From positions 49,880,615 through 49,944,614 of the forward strand of contig NC_068998.1 of assembly GCF_001194135.2 (NCBI RefSeq): a stretch of DNA of 64,000 nt, read 5' to 3'. The notes beneath the pieces were generated by a model, which saw nothing but the letters and a program-made list of their open reading frames with translations, ran no database searches and was not told the origin of the DNA. Both the position numbers and the translations under genes were made by a program. Positions within the stretch are counted from its first letter, which is position 1. The number at the start of each line of letters is the position of its first letter. This DNA is from Octopus bimaculoides. Its lineage: Eukaryota. Positions 2,857 to 60,228 of the stretch are shown here, piece after piece.

Positions 2857-4307
2857 ATGAAAAAATTTATTTGCATATTTTTTCTTCTTTTCGGTAAGTT
2901 GCTCTTCCCTCAGCCGGTTATATATATATATATATATATATATACATGCATTCTCTCTGTTAATTCCCTCGTGTTTCTTTCTAGTGAAAAGCGTAGGCTG
3001 GAAACGTAAAAGATCTGTTTTCCGAGCGTCAGACTAATGCACCTGCTTGTTGTTTATACACATATCTTCAGCTTTTGTTCTTTTGTAAATTGCATATATA
3101 TATATATATATANNNNNNNNNNNNNNNNNNNNNNNNNNNNNNNNNNNNNNNNNNNNNNNNNNNNNNNNNNNNNNNNNNNNNNNNNNNNNNNNNNNNNNNN
3201 NNNNNNNNNNNNNNNNNNNNNNNNNNNNNNNNNNNNNNNNNNNNNNNNNNNNNNNNNNNNNNNNNNNNNNNNNNNNNNNNNNNNNNNNNNNNNNNNNNNN
3301 NNNNNNNNNNNNNNNNNNNNNNNNNNNNNNNNNNNNNNNNNNNNNNNNNNNNNNNNNNNNNNNNNNNNNNNNNNNNNNNNNNNNNNNNNNNNNNNNNNNN
3401 NNNNNNNNNNNNNNNNNNNNNNNNNNNNNNNNNNNNNNNNNNNNNNNNNNNNNNNNNNNNNNNNNNNNNNNNNNNNNNNNNNNNNNNNNNNNNNNNNNNN
3501 NNNNNNNNNNNNNNNNNNNNNNNNNNNNNNNNNNNNNNNNNNNNNNNNNNNNNNNNNNNNNNNNNNNNNNNNNNNNNTATATATATATATATATATATAT
3601 ATATATATATATGTATGTATGTATATATGCACGTACATATGACTATGTATATGCATATATATGTGTGTGTGTATGTAATTCATCGTTTCTTCTTAAAATT
3701 GCTTTACTTTTGGAATACAAATCATCTGTAATGTGCAACTTGATTTGAAAATCTAGATTATCAATCTCCCTTCTGAATGCTACATGGCGTTTACATGCAA
3801 CTTACCCTAGAATTCAATATTTCGAAGGAAAAGAACTAATATACTCACTGACTATATGTGCAGAACACATAAAATATACCCACTCCAACAAATTTGTAAA
3901 GATAATTCGACAAGAATTCATAACGAGTAAAATTGAAAGCATAAATTTTGAAAATGACAATCGTACAATTAATGATCCCGTATTTTCTAGATCAACAACT
4001 TACGCACACAGAAAAAAAACAAAAAAAAAAAACAAAATCAAAATATAATATTCCTACATATGTTATTAAACGTCTACTTTCAGATTCAAGAGAAGAATTT
4101 ATACTCTAGTTGTAGAGAAACGTTTCATTTTATATGCCGTATTTCTGTGTAACCAACAAAGTAGAACATAAATCAAGTAGAAAAATATTTATTTTTTAAA
4201 ATTCTAGGTACGGCAGTCTCCAATTACTGCTTCAGAGAAGGCGCGAAACATTGCAAATATGTTCTAAGACGTTTTCCTGTAACGCACCCGGATATTAACC
4301 TCTGCAA
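2857..4307 (+). pseudogene. G1: truncated member of the 6-Cys tandem family; join(2857..2893,4208..4307); no exon B or tail exon found
   Basis: Signal exon MKKFICIFFLLF(G)|GTAAGT. Exon A after TTCTAG| gives GTAVSNYCFREGAKHCKYVLRRFPVTHPDINLC(K)|GTAAAT, with the same 37/100-nt lengths and phases as the paralogs. I found no B or tail exon in the gap-free 4.3-11 kb region. Confidence 0.75.
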
Positions 4308-4818
4308 GTAAATATTCGGTTTTTACTATTATCGTTCATATTTCCGCCAATAAACTTTGCAAATTCATTTCACATACTCACTTGTTAATATTGTAACAAG
4401 CTATGTTACGAGATATATTCCACAAAATGGAATATATCTAACAATGCCTAAGACATTGTTAGATATGGGATAAATTACTTGTCCCATTGATTCAACACCC
4501 ATTCATACATCATGTTTGAATTATATAAATGCAATACAATTCTATCATAGGCTCACATGCCCCACTTATCAACTGTTATTTAGGTAAACCTCTCTGAATT
4601 TCTAATTACCATCATTTCGACCGCAGAAATAGGAACGATAATATTCTCACACTTAAGCGACCACAGAATACTAACCATATTAATATTTCTGATATTGTAA
4701 GGAGGTTAGCGGAGAGAATCGTTAGCACGCCGGTCGAAATGCTTAGAGACATTTCGTCCGTCTTTACGTTTTGCCTTTTTAATATATCTTCAGCATCAAA
4801 TGTTTACCGCATTAGTTA

Positions 4819-58400: not shown

Positions 58401-60228
58401 AGTTGGTTGAGTCTAATGGTGATTACGAAGGTGTTTTGGAGTGATCACTAGTGATAGCAATGTTATGTCCCCATTTCTCTTCCCACATAGACTCAAACTC
58501 AAGACGGAGGCCTACATCAAGTGTCTGGAAGCGATAAAGCTGCCAGCGATGAAGAGGGTTGCCGCTGCAAGACCCTGTATCTGACTACAGGATTCTGCAC
58601 CATGCCACACATGCAGCAGATGCCAGCCATGGTAGTCAGACTATTTCTCCGATCACAATCACCCCTAGCATCTGGCCATCTAACTCCCGAAACTGCGATC
58701 CCCTTGATAATTACGTGTGGGGCAAAATTTCTTGAACTGAACGCAATGATTATGGCAGCATTCATCATTTTAAACACGGAGACCGTAAAGAAGAGTTGCA
58801 GGAGATTCCGAAGTTATCTCGACTCCGTGGTTGATATCAATGGCGATTTTACTGAATAAATTTAGTCGTTAGAGTTTCATGATATTTTATGTAATTTTCG
58901 TAAATATATCTGTTAAAATAAGATGTCTGATTTATTTTTATTTTCAAGTAATAATTTAGACGAAAGTTTATTCACCGCACCTTATACACACACACACATA
59001 CACCCCCCCCACATATATATATATATATATATATATGTGTGTGTGTGTGTGTGTGTGTGTGTATGTGNNNNNNNNNNTGTGTGTGTGTGTGTGTGTGTGT
59101 GTGTGTGTGTGTGTGTGTGTGTGTGTGTGTGTGTGTGTGTGTGTTTGTTTGTGTGCTTGTGTGTGTTTGTGCGTATTCGTATTTGTGCCTAAATTGGTCA
59201 ACAATCCACACACTCTTGACATTTATCGTTTGTCGAAATATGGGCAGCAAATGTGTCAGGGTGAATTGAATTTGGTTCCATAAATTGATCTCAAATATAA
59301 ACGACTTAACATTTGCACGATATTATTTTAAAGAAAGCTAAGAGACTTTATCTACTTAAGAAATATAATACAAAACGATGTTTGCTGTTGTAAATGATTT
59401 TGTGACAAACGATTAAATGCAACTTTCGTATATTTTCCAGCCGTCTAAAAGTCTTACATGTATGCTATCCACCGGGTTCTAATTGCTTTCGCTCTATTCA
59501 CTTACTCCGTGAGCATGAATGTCAAAGTAAGCTATTTCACTTAATCCATTATTATTGATAAAAATACTGTATCACTCTCCTAGTTTCAAAACACCGATTA
59601 TTTTAGATAATTTCCTTTGTGAAGTCAATTCTAAGTGGATAAAATATTGAATCAATGATCATTTTGTAAAGGTGAACTTATCCTTTACCAGAAGAAAAAA
59701 ATATATTACTACATTGCATTCTTTTATGATGGGACACAGGAAGAGCATCTTCCTGTATATATTGTTTTTATATGTGTGGTTCTTTATAGCATTGAAGTCA
59801 GATTTTCATTTATAGTTTGCTGAGTACCAATCAACTGGATGTATTTTATTGTTTTACTAGGAACCAGTTATATATACATCTGGAAAATCTACATAGTGGA
59901 ATATATATATATATATATATATATATATATATATACATACATACTGGAAACCAGTAATATATTATATATATTTACTTTCTCGACATACGCGTAATATATG
60001 GAGAAATATAATATAGAAAATACAAATAAAACCCTAGTAAATCAGAGGAGTTAGTGTCAATAATTTTTTTTTAATGTTTGTCTAAAAATAACTATAACGA
60101 ACTGTTTTGTATCTATTTCAGGAAAGACGACCGAGAGTGGTGTACATTCGACCTACATTTGCACTCCATATAAGCCATTACTGCTATTCCTTATGTCGTC
60201 AGTGGTGTCGAGAAATAAAATCATATGA
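55428..60228 (+). CDS. G7: divergent 6-Cys family protein, ~109 aa; join(55428..55464,57554..57653,59441..59526,60122..60228)
   Basis: MKACVFVFILSFFLSAIQSCIVSAQTYCKLALDQYPLRNPDVNYCNRLKVLHVCYPPGSNCFRSIHLLREHECQRKTTESGVHSTYICTPYKPLLLFLMSSVVSRNKII*. Exon lengths 37/100/86 match the paralogs. The first donor is a weak GTAGAT, with an alternative at 55482; the tail exon is the least certain. Confidence 0.75.
58360..58900 (+). mobile_element. Tc1/mariner (DD37D-like) transposase fragment
   Basis: Frameshifted SIWPSNSRNCDPLDNYVWG matches the WPPNSPDLNPLDYYVWG motif. Confidence 0.7.

Follow-up and report, generated by a model that had tools for sequence, protein, structure and literature searches.

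Does this locus of Octopus bimaculoides encode a family of small cell-surface proteins and, if so, to which known proteins are they related? A preliminary description of the DNA had proposed a hidden tandem cluster of genes for small six-cysteine surface proteins. The window, meaning the whole stretch of 64,000 nucleotides that was analysed, corresponds to CM046618.1:49,880,615-49,944,614 of assembly GCA_001194135.2 (identical sequence). It was found that each unit of the cluster consists of four exons: one for a signal peptide, two for a domain of about 56 residues with six Cys, and one for a tail. The domain is confidently predicted to be a three-helix, six-Cys bundle. Its nearest known relative, assigned with moderate confidence by sequence comparison, is the N-terminal domain of the repulsive guidance molecules (RGMs), that is, the BMP/GDF-binding module of these glycosylphosphatidylinositol (GPI)-anchored proteins.

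The exons were located by a six-frame scan with the patterns C-x7-C-x15-17-C for the first domain exon (A) and C-x6/7-C-x11/12-C for the second (B), microsatellite Cys runs being excluded. Exactly seven A-type and six B-type segments were obtained in the window, all on the + strand and none on the - strand, and the remaining pattern matches were (TG)n-type microsatellite. Scanning for ATG followed by 34 nt and GT, with a hydrophobic translation, gave seven signal exons (S) of 37 nt. Alignment and translation revealed six intact tail exons (T) and one relic without an acceptor. All acceptors are AG and all donors GT, and a sensitive tblastn with all exon peptides, run over both strands of the window, did not detect additional A, B or T exons. 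These rescans agree with the exon counts, strand, phases (1/2/1) and GT-AG borders given in the preliminary description. Its length of about 100 nt for the A exons was exact for six of them (100 nt), but the A exon of g7 measures 91 nt. The B exons are 92, 92, 89, 86, 86 and 86 nt long.

The exons fall into units g1 to g8 (Table 1). Complete S-A-B-T sets are present in g2, g3, g4 and g8, while g1 has S and A, g5 has S and T, g6 has S, A and B, and g7 has A, B and T. The B and T exons of g1, the A and B exons of g5, the T exon of g6 and the S exon of g7 were looked for in the window and none was found; those of g6 and g7, as well as parts of the relic copy near 28-33 kb, could be hidden in assembly gaps. 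Splicing reproduced the five open frames of 98-161 aa proposed before, namely 98 (g2), 98 (g3), 103 (g4), 109 (g8) and 161 aa (g6+g7). The reported Cys spacing and the conserved P...PD and R were also recovered, the six Cys, P24, P28-D29 and R35 being invariant in 6/6 complete modules (A+B). The mean column identity among these modules was 54%, and the pairwise identity to g3 ranged from 26 to 66%. As a separate observation, the first bases of the tail exons (14100-14110 and 18224-18234; G/A-GGCTGTGA) resemble the starts of A exons (16082-16095 and 25244-25257; G-C/T-GCTG-C/T-G/A), and the encoded residues are alike as well, RAV(S/T) in the tails and (G/R)A(A/V) in the A exons.

In order to define the family, a domain profile from the window was run in an exhaustive HMMER search against 1.84 billion representatives at E ≤ 1e-3. 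It matched 29 proteins, and the named relatives, called "uncharacterized" or "hypothetical", all come from Octopus (O. bimaculoides, O. vulgaris and O. sinensis). One entry in the list, P0014 (1597 aa, with Cys/Asp-rich repeats), was a spurious repeat match and is not a family member. Another, P0027, is a 38-aa A-exon open reading frame on a genomic Logan contig (SRR11869391, 2116 nt, L002), which aligns with the g3 region over 1.5 kb at 65% identity and may come from another octopod. Many members are 92-123 aa long and combine a signal peptide and a single domain with a C-terminus that is hydrophobic, and others carry 2-9 domains. In the locus LOC128248155 (L003, CM046606.1:89,238,283-89,285,765), nine A+B modules extend over 43 kb; there is one signal exon but no hydrophobic tail, and the product is probably a secreted multi-domain member. 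With the first alignment a word-indexed homologue search returned three proteins, and with the 39-domain alignment one; as known members were missed, it says nothing on distribution. Since family genes also flank the window, it is part of a larger tandem array that is Octopus-specific as far as the databases show, as expected for the lineage-restricted, expanded family suggested at the outset. Literature searches (locus names; RGM and cephalopod; GPI, cysteine-rich and octopus) found no paper on the family, so the description "uncharacterised" stands. The genes are already predicted in databases, and were never characterised in the literature found.

The identity of the domain was approached through its predicted structure and through profile comparisons. 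An AlphaFold2 model from a 39-sequence alignment (predicted local distance difference test, pLDDT, 92; predicted template modelling score, pTM, 0.77) places helices at residues 2-22 (kinked), 32-42 and 48-60. The RGM N-domain is a three-helix bundle with three disulfides, and it is the part through which RGMs act as BMP co-receptors (PMC7354924). When 24,736 Pfam models were scanned, RGM_N (PF06535, gathering score 24.2 bits) was by far the most frequent match, being hit by 14 of the 29 members at E ≤ 10. The gathering score was exceeded by P0004, the closest O. vulgaris counterpart of g2-g4 (37.9 bits), and by P0008 (29.1 bits, profile positions 6-56 of 70), which is tied to the window profile at E 8e-15. 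With a profile of 39 family domains (A7), RGMB N-domain chains took the top four places in the PDB (E 0.02-0.15). The hhalign comparison gave a probability of 62% (P 7e-5) against RGMB-ND and of 44% (P 2.4e-4) against 64 vertebrate RGM N-domains, with P values from 7e-5 to 3e-4 across comparisons. A search with full-length RGMB gave only vertebrate RGMBs among the matches listed (120), and thus no invertebrate RGM N-domains with which to deepen the profile. Using a local hidden Markov model of the RGM N-domain, 61% of 46 octopus domains scored above the 99th percentile of composition-preserving shuffles, and 63% reached P < 0.05 and 35% P < 0.01 against Cys-fixed shuffles; these fractions overstate the evidence, because paralogues are not independent samples. 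Homology of the octopus domain to RGM_N is thus judged rather likely, and the domain, which the preliminary description could not name, is tentatively called RGM N-terminal-like.

A number of results weigh against this homology. None of the five spliced window proteins gave a significant Pfam match, and RGM_N remained below the cut-off on g4 (10.9 bits, E 0.56) and on the g2-g4 fusion P0033 (12.4 bits, E 0.2). The E-value of P0004 (2e-9) is a sum over four near-duplicate repeats. The RGM_N matches cover mostly about 30 central residues, with hhalign probabilities of 40-62%. The RGM C-terminal domain (PF06534) occurred in none of the 29 members, among the matches listed (25 of 32 families), and every vertebrate RGMB among the matches listed has it. 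At E ≤ 1e-3, canonical RGMs were not among the matches of the window profile in the exhaustive HMMER search. A Foldseek search of the domain model against the PDB, insensitive for 60-residue helical bundles, returned zero matches, and that of a full-length model gave noise only; a fold identity with RGMB-ND is therefore putative. Finally, Arg100, Gly101, Leu103 and His106 of RGMB, in the helix 2-3 linker and helix 3, contact BMP/GDF (PMC7354924), and map through the hhalign alignment to C5+1, +2, +4 and +7. Equivalents of Arg100 were seen in g2-g4 only, and those of Gly101 and His106 in 0/6 modules. A hydrophobic residue is present at the Leu103 position in 6/6.

The insignificant Pfam scores of the window proteins, the empty Foldseek result, the failure of the window profile to reach canonical RGMs and the unconserved contact residues would all suit a different explanation, in which the domain is a new Cys-stabilised helical fold unrelated to RGM and the likeness is due to a short C-x8-C-x7-C helical hairpin that arose by convergence. 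On this view the proteins would be secreted or surface molecules peculiar to octopus, for example a pheromone or odorant carrier, an adhesion tag or an antimicrobial. We regard this as unlikely, although it deserves serious consideration, since RGM_N is the top family in 14/29 members among all the Pfam models scanned, the RGM signal outlasts Cys-fixed shuffling, and P0008 fits most of the profile above a curated cut-off. A far less probable identity is that of GDNF/GAS1 (GFR-alpha-like) domain proteins, the automatic UniProt name of A0A0L8GPX5 (P0001). GFR-alpha and GAS1 are GPI-anchored, all-helical, Cys-rich proteins, and there is a local likeness between C-K-x-A-L-K-x-Y-P of the octopus domain and C-H-K-A-L-R-Q-F-F of GFRa1. 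The label (PF02351 / SM00907) nevertheless failed every test run and was rejected. P0001 had no Pfam match at E ≤ 10, PF02351 was absent among the matches listed (25 of 32 families), and no GFR-alpha chain was among the PDB matches of the family profile at E ≤ 10. The hhalign comparison with GFRa1 D2-D3 (sequence verified against 6Q2N) gave a probability of 0.2% and P 0.32, and the octopus domain has six Cys in about 56 residues compared with ten in about 90.

Two other candidates were discarded. The HRM domain of class B G-protein-coupled receptors (C-x16-C-x8-C) appeared with the window-only profile (E 0.04-0.07 to the ectodomain of the calcitonin receptor-like receptor, CLR) and was lost with the 39-domain profile; the predicted octopus fold is without beta hairpins. 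The Ly6/uPAR three-finger fold was rejected on the all-helical prediction, the six Cys and the lack of a Pfam match.

The tails extend 23-36 residues after the last Cys, and in most single-domain members the very last residues form a hydrophobic run without charges. Their layout comprises small residues, a spacer and a hydrophobic end of 11-23 uncharged residues, g8 being atypical, and no cytoplasmic residues follow in g2-g4 and g7. This is the arrangement that had been described, with a signal peptide, a Cys domain and a C-terminal hydrophobic stretch lacking a cytoplasmic tail. As a typical transmembrane helix is longer than this hydrophobic run, and RGMs are GPI-anchored as well, the tail is probably a GPI anchor signal.

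The explanation that we favour, at about even chances, is that units with a signal exon, a six-Cys three-helix RGM-N-like domain and a tail encode surface ligand-binding proteins. The products would enter the secretory pathway, where the short hydrophobic C-terminus would be exchanged for a GPI anchor, and tail-less members would be secreted. At the cell surface, the exposed helical domain would bind an extracellular partner. By analogy with the RGMs, the most likely partner would be a cystine-knot ligand of the BMP/GDF type, gripped by the helix 2-helix 3 region, and the protein could act as a co-receptor or trap. The near-neutral divergence of the non-Cys residues would give each copy its own specificity. 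A BMP/GDF-type ligand, chosen by analogy, is the best candidate for the partner, and still a doubtful assignment. Parts in neural wiring, chemosensation or immunity, as put forward in the preliminary description, would likewise be conjectural. Still more speculative, and improbable in our estimation, is the idea that octopuses detached the ligand-binding N-module of RGM and amplified it into tandem, fast-diverging, membrane-tethered "mini-RGMs" of one or several domains, which would tune BMP/GDF signalling cell by cell or form a surface identity code. Clustered protocadherins were independently expanded in octopus, and a "mini-RGM" repertoire would parallel them.

The rate of divergence was estimated from ratios of non-synonymous to synonymous changes (dN/dS, Nei-Gojobori). 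The closest paralogues gave 0.76 (g2-g3), 0.72 (g3-g4), 0.52 (g2-g4) and 0.60 (g6-g7). Between g2 and g3 the synonymous divergence (0.217) equals that of the introns (about 0.21) and the non-synonymous divergence is 0.17; residues outside the Cys frame therefore change almost neutrally. Between the g4 protein and its best counterpart in O. vulgaris the identity is 56-60%, with the tail better conserved than the domain. Rapid diversification, as noticed in the preliminary description, is borne out by these values. The same high ratios, together with a synonymous divergence equal to that of the introns, the copies in a truncated or relic state (g1, g5 and the 30-33 kb remnant) and the transposon and satellite insertions, might indicate a decaying array of duplicated pseudogenes without protein function. 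This is very improbable, since all 26 exons of the preliminary description are open with canonical splice sites, 6/6 modules have the six Cys as well as the P, PD and R residues unchanged, and the same architecture persists in three Octopus species.

A separate matter is whether the exons form small genes or parts of larger ones. The preliminary description read them as five separate small genes. The exon phases and the intact units fit this, but the RefSeq and 2015 models join units into three- and two-domain proteins, and thus the claim is one of two readings. With phase 1 at both ends of every module, splicing can also unite neighbouring units in one multi-domain protein, and both structures are phase-compatible. 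In the multi-domain structure, g1-g4 would form one three-domain gene, g5/g6/g7 one two-domain gene and g8 a single-domain gene, with the internal S and T exons used alternatively as first or last exons, or else relics. Only the gene structure is at issue here, and the RGM-like identity of the domain agrees with it. In all six isoforms of LOC128249887, the B exon of a unit is spliced to the A exon of the unit that follows, at the borders found here, and O. vulgaris annotators predicted a four-domain counterpart (P0004). The nine modules behind one signal exon in LOC128248155, on another chromosome, demonstrate that true multi-domain members exist. The missing tail exon of g6 and signal exon of g7, as well as the phase 1 module borders, point the same way. 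Against separate genes it also counts that RefSeq lists no single-domain isoform for g2-g4 and that the exact single-unit products had no match in a 15-billion-protein collection.

Larger genes are therefore a real possibility, if somewhat the less probable one in our judgement. Each of g2, g3, g4 and g8 has kept the full exon set, and tandem duplicates are often fused by gene predictors. The signal exons of g2 and g3 are identical (37/37), whereas the duplicated DNA around them is only 74-79% identical, and conservation of the g3 signal exon and of the block upstream of it goes far beyond that of neutral DNA, which diverges by about 21%. This promoter-like block, about 90 nt in length, precedes the signal exons of g1-g4 and, in part, that of g8, and its g2 and g3 copies are nearly identical. 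Within it, an E-box-like CATCTG(T/C)T stands about 85 nt ahead of the ATG, and AAACGGCAACA about 45 nt ahead. In g2 and g3 the internal tail exons are still open, and an AATAAA is present after those of g2, g4 and g7, so that in g2 it has been kept at an internal position. Separate small genes and larger ones are thus both candidate structures.

Contrary to the preliminary description, the cluster is not wholly hidden, for RefSeq and UniProt already hold predicted proteins over most of its exons. RefSeq LOC128249887 covers window positions 2857-27543 and merges g1-g4 into one three-domain gene (233 aa). Its six isoforms, of 203-233 aa, follow the order S(g2 or g1)-A-B(g2)-A-B(g3)-A-B-T(g4) with exon borders exactly as found here. 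Unit g8 is RefSeq LOC106875519 (52695-60228), in which the signal exon is 18 nt longer (55465-55482), with a stronger donor (CCAG|gtat) that inserts CRYHMP and keeps phase 1. This model also carries an N-terminal extension from an exon near 52695; as it would bury the signal peptide, the extension is probably 5' untranslated region. The g6+g7 modules led by the g5 signal exon correspond to UniProt A0A0L8GPX5 from the 2015 annotation (171 aa), auto-named "GDNF/GAS1 domain-containing protein" and, among the protein sets retrieved, the sole form in which g6-g7 are present. All three existing models bear uncharacterised or automatic names. The annotation of the locus is hence inconsistent: g1-g4 are fused by RefSeq, g6-g7 exist, in the protein sets retrieved, only as the 2015 model, and the UniProt domain name is unsupported.

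Family genes lie on both sides of the window. The upstream neighbour, LOC128249851 (P0022; L001 2343-6031), stops about 1.1 kb before window position 1 and has the same S-A-B structure. When it is read through the B-exon donor, a hydrophobic end (CGMIFSLLLIVFG) is reached, as in O. vulgaris P0015; RefSeq takes a different last exon. The downstream neighbour begins within the window with an eighth signal exon, which falls outside the span given in the preliminary description (Table 1).

The DNA of the window is AT-rich and eukaryotic, with 15 assembly gaps. No exon touches a gap, and every gap is intronic or lies between units. As reading frames are set by the exon phases alone, gap length is irrelevant to them. 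The g3 unit from ATG to stop (14781-18291) and the A-B-T part of g7 (47893-50491) are gap-free. In a self-BLAST, which showed that the exons sit in duplicated units and the tail exons within a repeated block of about 500 bp, the gap flanks of g1, g2 and g4 were colinear with the gap-free g3 unit, supporting their order and orientation. Continuity of g6 and g8 across gaps rests on one assembly, the same on which the RefSeq models were built.

Table 1. Positions in the window of the exons of the six-Cys cluster and of associated blocks and gaps.
Feature	Position	Strand	Remark
g1 signal exon (MKKFICIFFLLF)	2857..2893	+	37 nt, phase 1 donor; spliced to g2 A in RefSeq isoform X2 (P0034)
g1 A exon (Cys1-3)	4208..4307	+	copy truncated, no B or T after it
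g2 signal exon	11099..11135	+	ATG + 34 nt + GT scan
g2 A exon	12189..12288	+	Cys pattern scan
g2 B exon, 92 nt	13257..13348	+	Cys pattern scan
g2 tail exon with stop	14100..14167	+	AATAAA about 40 nt downstream
g3 signal exon	14781..14817	+	37/37 identical to g2 S; upstream block conserved
g3 A exon	16082..16181	+	Cys pattern scan
g3 B exon	17119..17210	+	Cys pattern scan
g3 tail exon with stop	18224..18291	+	unit gap-free
g4 signal exon	24138..24174	+	ATG + 34 nt + GT scan
g4 A exon	25244..25343	+	Cys pattern scan
g4 B exon, 89 nt	26445..26533	+	Cys pattern scan
g4 tail exon with stop	27458..27543	+	3' end of RefSeq LOC128249887; AATAAA downstream
Relic copy	30054..32700	+	g7 A-B-intron-like block; tail-like remnant at about 32600-32700 without AG acceptor; gaps on flanks
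g5 signal exon	34041..34077	+	first exon of the g6+g7 two-domain protein in the 2015 model (P0001)
g5 tail exon, open reading frame intact	37015..37100	+	no A or B between g5 S and T
g6 signal exon	41112..41148	+	ATG + 34 nt + GT scan
g6 A exon	44266..44365	+	Cys pattern scan
g6 B exon, 86 nt	45757..45842	+	downstream: satellite and gap, no tail exon found
g7 A exon, 91 nt	47893..47983	+	no own signal exon; phase fits g6 B
g7 B exon	49428..49513	+	Cys pattern scan
g7 tail exon with stop	50406..50491	+	AATAAA downstream
g8 signal exon	55428..55464	+	RefSeq donor at 55482, phase unchanged
g8 A exon	57554..57653	+	Cys pattern scan
g8 B exon	59441..59526	+	Cys pattern scan
g8 tail exon with stop	60122..60228	+	atypical: 11 hydrophobic residues, then SRNKII
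Signal exon of next family gene LOC128249882 (P0026), 40 nt, MLKLFVIISALIA	63748..63787	+	remainder of the gene beyond the window
Promoter-like blocks	2770-2856, 11010-11098, 14690-14780, 24050-24137, 55340-55427	+	upstream of g1-g4 and g8 S
Gaps in S-A introns	g1 3113-3577; g2 11682-11736; g4 24429-24438; g6 43030-43636		
Gap between g6 and g7	46349-46358		10 N
Gaps in g8 A-B intron	58019-58354 and 59068-59077		

Some repeats were observed among the units. A 27-nt unit is repeated about 13 times with 93-97% identity inside the S-A intron of g6 (41999-42349), and a 137-bp unit is tandemly duplicated with 97.8% identity just upstream of the g7 B exon (49044-49315). A satellite of the (ATCATCAATC)n-like type at about 46000-46700 spans the 10-N gap between g6 and g7, at the expected place of the g6 T and g7 S exons. 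Close behind the g4 tail exon, a C2H2 zinc-finger open reading frame fragment of the opposite (-) strand (27829-28100; Pfam zf-C2H2 E 1e-10) runs into the gap 28104-28960. Apart from this fragment, a Pfam scan of ten other open reading frames of the window gave nothing.

The RGM N-domain has been described as confined to RGMs. If the homology holds, the octopus proteins would be the first family of that domain alone, and nature would have supplied in them dozens of divergent versions of a scaffold that binds BMP/GDF. Octopus-specific expansions (protocadherins, C2H2 zinc fingers) form a short list, which the locus lengthens by a lineage-restricted, tandemly expanded, probable surface family; such expansions are candidates for neural or sensory novelty. 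The family is interesting, and not categorically new. Its novelty would lie in a lineage-specific cluster that evolves fast and in which RGM-N-like domains stand alone or in tandem, the key link being a moderate remote homology.

Among known systems, the Ly6/uPAR proteins follow the same logic as the octopus family, with a signal peptide, one small disulfide-rich domain, a GPI signal (predicted in octopus) and clustered fast-evolving genes. Their three-finger fold, however, is all-beta with 8-10 Cys, whereas the octopus domain has six Cys and is predicted to be all-helical. The GDNF/GAS1 domain is all-helical, Cys-rich and found on GPI-anchored proteins, but its profile similarity to the octopus domain was undetectable. 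The closest comparison is that with the RGM N-domain (PF06535; RGMB-ND 4UHZ, 4UI0, 6Z3H and 7NDG). Both domains are small and six-Cys, with three helices (predicted in octopus) and, in RGMB-ND, three disulfides, and both share an identical C3-x8-C4-x7-C5 core and a conserved K/R-x-L-x-x-Y motif. The full spacing differs, being C-x4-C-x22-C-x8-C-x7-C-x21-C in RGMB-ND and C-x7-C-x16-C-x8-C-x6/7-C-x11/12-C in octopus, where helix 3 is about nine residues shorter and the glycine of the RGD/RGN loop and His106 of RGMB are not conserved. In both cases the domain directly follows the signal peptide in a protein with a C-terminal lipid-anchor signal, which in octopus is predicted. Unlike the RGMs, the octopus proteins carry the N-domain-like module alone or in tandem. 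They are without the vWF-D-like autocleaving GDPH C-terminal domain and thus without the neogenin-binding part, and measure 98-233 aa compared with about 430 aa for RGM. They are tandemly amplified and fast-evolving, whereas RGMs are highly conserved (vertebrate RGMB 70-99% identity). What the octopus proteins would have in common with full-length RGMs (RGMa/b/c and C. elegans DRAG-1) is a surface location, a probable GPI anchor and an N-terminal helical Cys domain.

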